In this document: positions 1-2,533 of the stretch, piece by piece | Layout of the letters: each line of letters begins with the position of its first letter | How positions within the stretch are numbered: position 1 is the first letter of the stretch | Assembly: GCA_004764695.1 (NCBI GenBank) | Contig: SMSO01000034.1 | Location: 2,046,001-2,110,000 of the forward strand | DNA from: Schizochytrium sp. TIO01 | Lineage: Eukaryota > Protista > Bigyra: Labyrinthulomycetes | DNA: 64,000 nt | Direction: 5' to 3' | The notes under the pieces: generated by a model | Database searches by the model: none | The model's input: only the letters and a program-made list of their open reading frames with translations | Told to the model about the DNA's origin: nothing | Position numbers and translations under genes: made by a program

Positions 1-2533
1 ACAATAGATGCACGCACGCATACATGGACGTGAGTGATCTAGGTTGGCTTTCAGCATTTATCTTTGTTGTGTTGTCATTTTGCTCTTTGTCCGATGGATA
101 TATACTCACTCAAACAAACAACTCATCCATCCATCAAACAAACAAGCGATTGCATAAACTTGCTTGCCAAAACAATCCCGACCCACCCACCAAACAACAA
201 ACCAAGCATCATGTATAAACAAGTCCACGAGCTGCGCTGTTGCGTAGACAACTTACGATAGTGATGTCAGCGACCGGTTCTCTTTCAGCGCCGCAGCCAC
301 TGCCTTGGCGCCCTCATCGCCGATATCGTTGCCTCCAAGACTGTCGATTTGATTGAATGATGGCAAGCAATACATTACACGTTATATATTACAATATAAG
401 CACGCATGCACGCATGGACGTGAGTGATCTAGGTTGGCTTTCAGGATTTATCTTTGTTGTGTTGTCATTTTGCTCTTTGTTCGATGGTTGTATACTCACT
501 CAAACAGACAACCCATCCATCCATGAAACAAACAAGAGATTGCATAAACTTGCAAAACAACACCGACCCACCCACCAAACAACAAACCAACCATCATCTA
601 CAAACAAGGCCACGAGCTGCGGTGTTGCGTAGACAACTTACTTGAGTGATGTCAGCGACCGGTTCTCTTTCAGCGCCGCAACCACTGCCTTGGCGCCCTC
701 TGAGCCGATATCGTTGACCGAAAGACTGTCGATTTGATTGAATGATGGCAAGCGATACATTACACGTTACATATTACAATAGATGAACGCATGCATGCAT
801 GGACGTGAGTGATCTAGGTTGGCTTTCAGGATTTCATCTTTATTGTGTTGTCATTTAGCTGTATGTTCGATGGATGTATACTCACTCAAACAGACAACTT
901 ATCCATCCATCCATCCATCCATCCATCCATCCATCCATCCATCCATCCATCAAACAAACAAAGAAGCAATTGCATAAACTTGCAAAACAACACCGACCCA
1001 CCCACCAAACAACAAACCAACCATCATCTACAAACAAGGCCACGAGCTGTGGTGTTGCGTAGACAACTAACTTACTCAAGTGATGTCAGCGACCGGTTCT
1101 CTTTCAGCGCCGCAGCCACTGCCTTGGAGCCCTCGTCGCCGATATAGTTGCCTTCAAGACTGTCGATTTGATTGAATGATGGCGAGCAATACATTACACG
1201 TTACATATTACAATAGATGCACGCATGCATGCATGGACGTGAGTGATCTAGGTTGGCTTGCAGCATTTATCTTTGTTGTGTTGTCATTTTGCTCTTTGTT
1301 CGATGGATATATATTCACTCAAACAGACAACCCATCCATCCATCAAACAAACAAGCGATTGCATAAACTTGCAAAACAATACCGACCCACCCACCAAACA
1401 ACAAACCAAGCATCATGTATAAACAAGTCCATGAGCTGCGGTGTTGCGTAGACAACTTACGATAGTGATGTTAGCGACCGGTTCTCTTTCAGCGCCGCAG
1501 CCACTGCCTTGGCGCCCTCTGAGCCGATTTTGTTCCACGAAAGACTGTCGATTTGATTGAATGATGACGAGCAATATATTACACGTTACATATTACAATA
1601 GATGCACGCATGCATGCATGGACGTGAGTGATCTAGGTTGGCTTTCAGCATTTATCTTTGTTGTGTTGTCATTTTGCTCTTTGTTCGATGGATGTATACT
1701 CACTCAAACAGACAACCCATCCATCCATCAAACAAACAAGCGATTGCATAAACTTGCAAAACAACACCGACCCACCCACCAAACAACAAACCAAGCATCA
1801 TGTACAAATAAGTCCACGAGCTGCGGTGTTGCGTAGACAACTTACTCAAGTGATGTCAGCGACCGGTTCTCTTTCAGCGCCGCAGCCACTGCCTTGGCGC
1901 CCTCTGAGCCGATCTGGTTGCGTTCAAGACTGTCGATTTGATTGAATGATGGCAAGCAATACATTACACGTTACATATTACAATAGATGCATGCATGCAT
2001 GCATGGACGTGAGTGATCTAGGTTGGCTTTCAGCATTTATCTTTGTTGTGTTGTCATTTTGCTCTTTGTTCGATGGATGTATACTCACTCAAACAGACAA
2101 CCTATCCATCCATCAAACAAACAAGCGATTGCATCAACTTGCAAAACAACACCGACCCACCCACCAAACAACAAACCAAGCATCATGTACAAACGAGTCC
2201 ATACGCTACGGTGTTGCGTAGACAACTTACACAAGTGATGTTAGCGACCGGTTCTCTTTCAGCGTCGCAGCCACTGCCTTGGCGCCCTCGTCGCCGATAT
2301 CGTTGCCCCAAAGACTGTCGATTTGATTGAATGATGGCAAGCAATACATTACACGTTACATATTACAATAGATGCATGCATGCATGCATGGACGTGAGTG
2401 ATCTAGGTTGGCTTTCAGCATTTATCTTTGTTGTGTTGTCATTTTGCTCTTTGTTCGAAGGATGTATACTCACTCAAACAGACAACTCATCCATCCATCA
2501 AACAAACCAGCCATTGCATAAACTTGCAAAACA
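1..2533. repeat. Tandem array of ~385-bp units (84-nt LRR exon + ~301-nt intron), about 6.5 copies visible
   Basis: Units start at about 1, 391, 776, 1210, 1595, 1980 and 2365. Spacing is mostly 385; one unit is 434 because of a (CCAT)n expansion at ~901-950. Confidence 0.97.

Follow-up and report, generated by a model that had tools for sequence, protein, structure and literature searches.

The window analysed here is a 64,000-nt stretch of the Schizochytrium sp. TIO01 assembly (G000; contig SMSO01000034.1, below C33, positions 2046001-2110000), and the 20 kb to its left were also read. It opens with a 385-bp tandem unit in 6.4 copies (window 1-2534; Tandem Repeats Finder). Six 84-nt segments lie on the minus strand, one per 385-bp unit, each preceded by ATCGACAG and followed by GTAAGT. 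Far from being an anonymous satellite, each 385-bp unit comprises a single exon and a single intron of a protein-coding gene. In total the gene has 22 exons: a short exon 1, 20 exons that encode leucine-rich repeats (LRRs) and a terminal exon, with the first six LRR exons falling into the window. The initial annotation had described six LRR exons at 257-2314 with only three single-base changes in their framework. All of these were found, with the residues as listed; the array itself extends further, continuing to the left of the window to a total of 20 LRR exons. The parts of the gene, in reading order, are as follows.

2863..2927, minus strand: exon 1, 65 nt, ATG plus 21 codons plus 2 nt (phase 2), then GTAAGT
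2315..2862, minus strand: intron 1, 548 nt, holding a pure (AAGC)73 microsatellite at 2559-2850
2231..2314, minus strand: LRR exon 1, ends GT; Pfam LRR_6 E=1.6e-4; matches ribonuclease inhibitor, NOD2 and RSP15 in the PDB
1846..1929, minus strand: LRR exon 2, ends GA; Pfam LRR_6 E=8.3e-4
1461..1544, minus strand: LRR exon 3, ends TC; sequence read
1076..1159, minus strand: LRR exon 4, ends GA; sequence read
642..725, minus strand: LRR exon 5, ends AA; downstream intron with an (ATCC)12.8 expansion at 901-951
257..340, minus strand: LRR exon 6, ends TC; sequence read
1..256, minus strand: intron leaving the window; 14 further LRR exons beyond, to C33:2040650
C33:2040029-2040365 (L032:4029-4365), minus strand, outside the window: terminal exon, acceptor at C33:2040365, 111 codons plus stop

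Left of the window, a unit of 558 bp contains a further microsatellite expansion (L032 about 6070-6252).

All 20 LRR exons are 84 nt long, run from phase 2 to phase 2 between AG/GT borders and encode one 28-residue LRR of the ribonuclease inhibitor (RI) type each. They are read from the second base, and the codon split between exons consists of the last two nucleotides of one exon and the invariant first T of the next. A script-joined frame check gave a spliced model of 2,082 nt and 693 amino acids (aa) with the terminal stop as the only one. No membrane segment was found in the 693-aa model (maximum Kyte-Doolittle value over 19 residues 1.03) and its N-terminus is not signal-like; the predicted product is a soluble protein of this length.

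When one repeat alone was searched, it scored 21.9 bits against the Pfam family LRR_6 (PF13516), which has a gathering cut-off of 23.4 bits. A phmmer search with one exon led to solved RI-like LRR chains, namely ribonuclease inhibitor (1a4y, 1z7x, 1dfj), NOD2 (5irl), RSP15, LRRC34, DRC5 and NLRX1. By these sequence matches the repeat is classed as a 28-residue RI-type LRR. It has the repeat length of RI and NLRC-type (LRR_6) proteins and their consensus LxxLxLxxNxIGxEGAKxLAxxL. Those proteins are single-copy and their repeats have diverged, whereas in the present gene the framework hardly varies and the variation is concentrated almost entirely in 4 of 28 positions. A protein search of 1.84 billion representatives returned 6,279 proteins at E <=1e-3, and none of the best 150 of them exceeded about 65% identity. 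In five of these library relatives (P0002, P0009, P0016, P0036 and P0004) the framework is likewise almost constant, repeat positions 1, 3, 4 and 6 vary, and position 9 has two states (D/A); their source records bear the generic automatic name "RanGAP". The occurrence of the same repeat design in otherwise unrelated library proteins suggests a widespread, little-described class. The repeat of P0002 is a 25-residue version of the design.

For the domain encoded by the terminal exon, neither a Pfam family (best E=0.1) nor an Atlas look-alike was found, and an AF2 model of the 111-aa tail showed two long helices at a predicted local distance difference test (pLDDT) score of 66. The gene model consists of head, LRRs and tail only. 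A NACHT or NB-ARC domain, another nucleotide-binding oligomerization domain (NOD) or a ROC-COR GTPase was not present in it; head and tail belong to no Pfam family, and 693 aa leave no room for a NOD.

The gene is one member of a large family. The 385-bp unit gave at least 387 matches at 92-96% identity in about 27 arrays on 14 contigs, with unit lengths of 374-558 bp. From these matches 201 family exons out of 21 arrays were sampled, and 177 complete units were aligned. The tail exon had 101 matches, mostly open frames, with amino-acid identities of 35-100%, and the head exon together with 135 nt upstream was found in at least 40 copies (89-100% identity). Seventeen residues, among them an E-L-x-C-x-H core and an L-G-x-L-G-x-Y end, did not vary in an alignment of 21 tails (35-97% identity). 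At 11 of the 12 paralogous loci inspected the head retained its ATG, its frame and phase and the GTAAGT that follows, and all 12 had LRR exons downstream and a divergent 5S rRNA gene. AG/GT borders were present in 200 of the 201 family exons, and none of the 201 contained an in-frame stop.

Expression was checked with Logan contigs from four runs on L032:3700-6060, a stretch left of the window with the terminal exon and four LRR exons. In runs X15 and X17, guessed to be RNA, exon bins were 10-70 times deeper than adjacent intron bins, and depth fell to about zero just past the stop codon; in the DNA run X1 depth was flat over the same stretch. An X17 contig joined 5496 to 5801, skipping 304 nt with ends CT..AC (GT..AG on the minus strand), which is the predicted intron. 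Many other contigs contained framework-to-framework joints at the predicted borders, with letters that differed exactly at the variable positions described below; an example of such an insert reads, on the minus strand, TGA followed by TCTTTGGT. A loose contig end at 4365 joined an LRR exon end to the terminal exon. These further joints do not derive from this locus and come from paralogs, so that splicing is shown at the family level, at the predicted borders. The gene is apparently spliced.

These observations bear on the possibility that the array is a non-coding spacer repeat with an accidentally open frame. A spacer has been proposed for repeats of similar layout: in Aurantiochytrium limacinum, the Group 0 LORE-TEARS, about nine copies of a roughly 385-bp unit lying between the 18S gene and the 5S gene closest to it, were treated as spacers without GenBank similarity, perhaps serving chromosome-end maintenance (bioRxiv 10.1101/2023.06.15.545109). 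In the literature library searched, LORE-TEARS were not mentioned beyond that preprint. The lack of a near-identical predicted protein among the best 150 matches would also be in keeping with a spacer. Such a repeat leaves unaccounted for the exon length fixed at 84 nt with its near-universal AG/GT borders, the RI-type LRR sequence in the exons, the head with its ATG and the 111-aa tail conserved family-wide, the RNA-like runs with exon-over-intron depth and exon-exon contigs, and the absence of stops where about 37 are expected. We consider it hardly credible.

The initial annotation had further stated that the x positions of the repeat differ by multi-nucleotide codon swaps and that these codons diverge more than the flanking introns. 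The swaps were borne out, with the variable codons being the x of x-L-x-x-N-x. In the order of the six window exons, the xx pairs read WG/ER/SW/EG/SV/GG, the residue after Asn D/Q/K/Y/D/D, the residue two positions on D/S/S/D/S/D and the split codon V/D/S/D/N/S, and three amino-acid changes (A>T, A>S, A>V), each of one base, occur in the framework. Among the six window units, nucleotide diversity (pi) at the 16 variable nucleotides reached 0.571. The introns had a pi of 0.056 (ratio of variable nucleotides to introns 10.2), the framework one of 0.018 and its third positions one of 0.024. The 18 alignable units of this gene gave 0.575 versus 0.058 (ratio 9.9), and the 177 units of 21 arrays 0.542 versus 0.041 (ratio 13.4, bootstrap 12.2-14.7). 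In this genome-wide alignment the median intron pi was 0.023 against the mean of 0.041, the framework had a pi of 0.027 and its third positions one of 0.039. The divergence of the variable codons thus exceeded that of the introns 10- to 13-fold, and also that of framework synonymous sites. Along the exon, the diversity was located as follows.

Exon nt 5-10: pi 0.30-0.72
Exon nt 14-16: pi 0.18-0.71
Exon nt 23-25: pi 0.46-0.47
Exon nt 45: pi 0.39
Exon nt 82-84: pi 0.47-0.69; in the window at 257-259, 642-644, 1076-1078, 1461-1463, 1846-1848 and 2231-2233, minus strand

Thirteen of the 15 most diverse among the 385 unit columns are variable exon positions, an excess far beyond chance. In the 201 exons, 72 different hexamers occurred at nt 5-10, 15 different triplets at nt 82-84 and 23 different codons behind Asn; the number of distinct combinations was 168. 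The four codons of x-L-x-x-N-x are truly hypervariable: one precedes the second Leu, two follow it and the fourth comes after Asn. Two further variable sites are of a different kind: nt 23-25 is nearly purely two-state (TCA Ser in 123 exons, GAC Asp in 72, intermediates rare), and nt 45 alternates between C and G (Ala 149, Gly 50). Synonymous sites between or beside the variable codons were cold, with pi values of 0.12 (nt 4), 0.07 (nt 13), 0.00 (nt 19), 0.03 (nt 22) and 0.00 (nt 46).

The variable codons are also under coding constraint. From position-specific base frequencies over the 201 exons, 36.7 stops were expected at the three freely varying in-frame codons (26.0 + 1.9 + 8.8) and none was seen; the split codon can never be a stop, since the invariant T at the first exon base is its third base. 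Among the codons after Asn, 87% were of the form NAN (D, N, K, E, Y, Q), and the second x was mostly G, S, R, Y, W or C, with NGC common. The ratio of nonsynonymous to synonymous diversity within the codons is saturated and therefore uninformative.

For the placement of the variable residues in the fold, an AlphaFold single-sequence model of P0009 served as a stand-in; its repeats are 64% identical to this exon, with pLDDT 70-80 over the repeats. In the model T-S-L-x-L forms the strand, the next five residues x-x-N-x-I form a loop and the helix starts from G-x-E-G. Two core leucines flank repeat position 1 on the strand, and positions 3, 4 and 6 fall where the strand ends and in the loop that leads to the helix. 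Strand and loop make up the inner face and rim of the solenoid in RI-type LRRs. The initial annotation had equated the x positions with the concave sheet; in the P0009 model the four codons lie on or just after the strand, and the canonical xx of LxxL (here T,S) never varies. The further claim that variation is confined to the ligand-binding face did not hold: position 9 (S/D) lies at the helix start, position 16 (A/G) inside the helix, and nt 82 is synonymous. Ser and Asp are both good helix N-caps, which suits a structural role with two states at position 9 better than a role in contacts.

The units themselves are remarkably uniform. Intron distance was 0.038 within and 0.041 between arrays, and the units of this gene differed from those of 20 other arrays by 4.4-7.0% in their introns. 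Among arrays with a known tail this distance stayed flat at 4.4-5.8% while tail identity to this gene ran from 57% to 94%. Since the tails are diverged and the units alike across loci, the genes are old and their arrays are under concerted evolution. Frequent unequal recombination and gene conversion hold the exon-plus-intron units about 96% alike family-wide; high internal conservation of the repeats was found together with exchange both within and between loci.

This uniformity is relevant to the notion that only constraint has been relaxed, the variable codons being neutral surface positions and everything else, introns included, being held by purifying selection, for instance as an rDNA spacer element. 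The arrays, flanked by 5S and 18S genes, do share the orientation of the ribosomal DNA (rDNA), which makes a role at the DNA level conceivable, and amino-acid use at the variable sites is broad. The introns, however, tolerate indels and microsatellite growth, as the range of unit lengths attests, and their diversity equals that of framework synonymous sites. Moreover, conversion overwrites the variable blocks too, so that a neutral site in the unit should settle at intron-like diversity instead of being 13 times more diverse. We regard relaxed constraint as an unlikely explanation. The 13-fold excess calls for either selection for diversity or a far higher input of new variants at these sites.

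The course of recent change was followed in three sets of recent segmental duplicates. In the first set, the alignment is ragged up to column 450, and intron differences were counted in the roughly 3,300 intron columns that follow.

C30a / C30b / C5: intron 8 of about 3,300, framework 0/544, variable 2/128
C19 versus C31: intron 17/2,856, framework 3/408, variable 4/96
C29 versus C6: intron 24/1,499, framework 0/204, variable 12/48
Pooled: intron 49/7,655 (0.64%), framework 3/1,156 (0.26%), variable 18/272 (6.6%)

Variable sites thus changed about 10 times faster than introns. Almost all of the variable-site events altered 2-9 bases together and yielded alleles that are common among other units of the family (CAA>ATA, TGA<>ATC, TCG<>ATA). 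In one duplicate exon the entire variable set had been replaced with the framework identical, and tandem neighbours sharing a rare hexamer and identical flanks displayed a clean TCA<>GAC or CAA<>ATC swap. As a converted site changes visibly with a probability equal to pi, conversion from random donors predicts the ratio of diversities (13-fold), near the 10-fold observed. Block swaps to existing alleles and a ratio of the predicted size mean that gene conversion suffices for the recent change, without a special mutator. The pattern of linkage is in agreement: the neighbouring x codons of the xx pair were associated (z=12.5), and the codon after Asn was weakly linked to them (z=4.6 and 2.6); the x-L-x-x-N-x codons showed no linkage to the S/D site, to nt 45 or to nt 82-84.

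A targeted or programmed diversification could take the form of codon-directed mutagenesis, of cassette copying like that of the lamprey variable lymphocyte receptors (VLRs) or of mitotic switching at chromosome ends, possibly within a clone. It would agree with the multi-nucleotide blocks by which recent duplicates differ, with the hypervariability of the synonymous nt 82, with the loss of linkage between variable blocks within about 10-20 nt and with the position of the arrays in recombination-prone, rDNA-flanked, chromosome-end-like regions. The blocks swapped, however, already exist as alleles elsewhere in the family, and the rate in duplicates is what untargeted conversion predicts. The synonymous sites within the variable cluster are cold, and the genomic gene is already complete and open. 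To our knowledge there is no mutator with codon precision. All told, programmed diversification appears very unlikely. Of the earlier suggestion of diversifying selection or targeted codon exchange, selection is favoured and the exchange of blocks is real; ordinary conversion suffices for it, with no need of a dedicated mechanism.

Two related ideas were rejected. Regional hypermutation was set aside because of the cold interleaved synonymous sites, which make a regional mutator unlikely and favour selection on amino acids. Units that are alike over 2x120 nt of flank and the entire framework still differ at 5-10 of the 16 variable nucleotides; the argument that identical flanks with different variable codons prove a mutator was discarded, as a star-like family gives some units with consensus flanks by chance.

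Old differences might also persist for mechanical reasons, without selection, if dense mismatches stop or reverse the repair of heteroduplexes and conversion skips the variable blocks. Mismatch-dependent heteroduplex rejection is established biology, and the main blocks differ at 3-6 adjacent bases. This leaves unexplained where the 72 hexamers came from, why stops are lacking and why residue types are structured, and in recent duplicates entire variable sets do convert. Mechanical persistence is accordingly given only small odds.

The best reading of the data, to which we assign a probability of roughly 0.65, is diversifying selection on encoded, exposed residues within a homogenised family; it is favoured by the cold synonymous sites together with the absent stops and the structured use of residues. 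Unequal recombination and gene conversion homogenise the units across loci, introns included. Four codons in each repeat nevertheless stay highly diverse, most probably through diversifying selection on solvent-exposed residues of the solenoid's inner face and rim, and conversion among units, as seen in the recent duplicates, shuffles short variable blocks into new combinations. The products probably serve as a repertoire of intracellular binding or recognition proteins. The 400 or more units could be viewed as a "population" in which very short distances uncouple a selected codon from its neighbours, which would fit the sharpness of the diversity peaks.

Several points weigh against this interpretation. 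Selection is argued from ratios of diversity, in which introns and the synonymous sites of the framework stand for the neutral rate. The most awkward single position is nt 82, the synonymous third base of an invariant Leu (201/201) at donor position -3, which nevertheless has a pi of 0.66. Amino-acid selection cannot act on this base, and no such rise in diversity is seen at the other synonymous sites next to variable codons. Nt 82 is never G and is almost fully set by nt 83, with A before T, C before A, T or C before G, and T before C; an effect of splice-site context or very old linked triplets are possible causes. The structural placement was taken from a model of a 64%-identical relative and not of this protein. 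Regarding expression, the RNA status of X15 and X17 is a guess and contig depth a crude measure; X20, the sole certain RNA run (5 Mb, tiny), gave one contig, inside an intron; and exactly one splice joint fits this locus, the rest being from paralogs.

The family is large and fast-diversifying, and its products are likely recognition proteins. It presents a very sharp case of a few codons that stay diverse while the DNA around them, with its introns, is homogenised, and it offers a natural system to study conversion tract lengths and selection at single-codon resolution. Repeats published as anonymous chromosome-end spacers would have to be re-read as exon-intron units of a large protein family, a warning that the masking of tandem repeats conceals real genes. 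If the products are recognition molecules, the thraustochytrid LRR repertoire would be built like the repeats of fungal NOD-like receptors (NLRs) and the brown-algal ROCO receptors, on another scaffold and beside the rDNA.

A more far-reaching and doubtful proposal is that the rDNA-flanked, chromosome-end-like placement exposes some 100 LRR genes to frequent ectopic exchange, by which clonal lineages re-deal their binding-face codons. Equally doubtful is its corollary of a recombination-driven, germline-free variable receptor system in a unicellular stramenopile, perhaps aimed at persistent mirusviruses. In such a system further variety could come from the skipping of exons, which share one phase.

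Among described systems, the repeats of fungal NLRs come closest in their mode of evolution. Fungal NLRs with WD, ANK or TPR repeats have near-identical repeats that evolve in concert within and between loci, with a few positions under diversifying selection on the interaction surface (Dyrka et al. 2014, PMC4986451; Paoletti 2007). The regime appears to be the same as here, where selection is read from diversity ratios and cold synonymous sites. In contrast, fungal NLRs contain no LRRs (PMC4986451) but a NOD domain, and their repeats stand in continuous coding sequence, whereas in Schizochytrium each LRR has its own exon, the introns are part of the homogenised unit and a NOD is lacking. The LRR-ROCO genes of the brown alga Ectocarpus, likewise a stramenopile, also have one LRR per exon of constant length and symmetric phase, undergo exon shuffling and are reported to evolve fast at sites on the concave face of their LRRs (PMC3341825; PMC11378527). 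Their exons measure 72 nt and encode a 24-aa plant-like LRR, a ROC-COR GTPase is present and homogenised introns have not been reported. Here the exons are of 84 nt with a 28-aa RI-type LRR, exon and intron together are about 96% alike across the genome and there is no GTPase. Instead of a NOD, GTPase or kinase domain the present genes encode an orphan two-helix tail, and they stand head to head with 5S genes beside the rDNA. The comparison of the initial annotation with lamprey VLRs and plant NLRs is best taken as an analogy. In lampreys an incomplete germline gene is completed somatically by the copying of LRR cassettes, whereas the genomic gene here is complete from ATG to stop and gives no hint of being assembled somatically; NLRs combine NACHT or NB-ARC with LRRs, and this gene has no NOD domain.

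The neighbourhood of the gene is ribosomal. Upstream of it follow:

2928..3384: spacer between the gene's ATG and the 5S gene, about 457 bp
3385..3503, plus strand: 5S rRNA gene (Rfam RF00001, 96.5 bits, E=1.3e-19), divergent from the LRR gene

The distance from ATG to 5S was about 430-480 bp at all 12 paralogous loci. As this head-to-head pairing is kept at 12 of 12 loci, a gene transcribed by RNA polymerase II and one transcribed by RNA polymerase III seem to share a small divergent control region. On the other side, an 18S-5.8S-28S cluster lies on the same strand as the LRR gene at L031 1-4945 (L031 = C33:2026001-2036000), the 3' end of the gene being about 9 kb upstream of it. A 30-bp tandem repeat in 5.7 copies was located upstream of the 18S gene at L031 9684-9853.

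The LORE-TEARS of Group 0 resemble this arrangement in their unit of about 385 bp, in the tandem arrays between 18S and the nearest 5S and in their homogeneity, there described for different chromosome ends; they were matched by the description of their layout and not by sequence. They were described as spacers in about nine copies, whereas here the unit is exon plus intron of an open LRR gene in 20 copies. They are also subtelomeric, with Group 1/2 repeats and the telomere beyond the 28S gene, whereas the present copy is assembled at 2.03-2.05 Mb of a 4.85-Mb contig. In the 10 kb beyond the part of its 28S gene that the analysis covered (L039, C33:2016001-2026000), which are AT-rich (30-42% GC), there were no tandem repeats, telomere repeats or open reading frames (ORFs) of at least 150 aa. 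Other tails were found at C33:1.92-2.0 Mb. This suggests that the copy is part of an internal chromosome-end-like island, or that two ends were joined in the assembly.

Pairs of arrays in opposite orientation, 40-80 kb apart, were also noted deep in other contigs (up to 9.0 Mb), namely in C30 (5.478 and 5.52 Mb), C31 (3.16 and 3.21 Mb) and C13 (5.67 + 5.72 and 7.23 + 7.30 Mb). They look like chromosome ends joined head to head in the assembly, or like internal palindromic end-like islands.

The window contains a second, diverged LRR gene (29565-33105, minus strand). Its exons, of which there are at least 11, measure 84 nt, are in phase 2 and encode one RI-type LRR each, and its introns are short and unrelated. 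As this gene has the exon design without the homogenisation, the design is old in the lineage and not peculiar to the satellite-like arrays. Its LRR exons are followed by an 879-aa ORF (26551-29187, minus strand) with a protein kinase domain (Pfam Pkinase E=8.9e-27), and just past the 3' end of this ORF lies a tRNA gene (window 26254-26325; Rfam RF00005, 66.4 bits).

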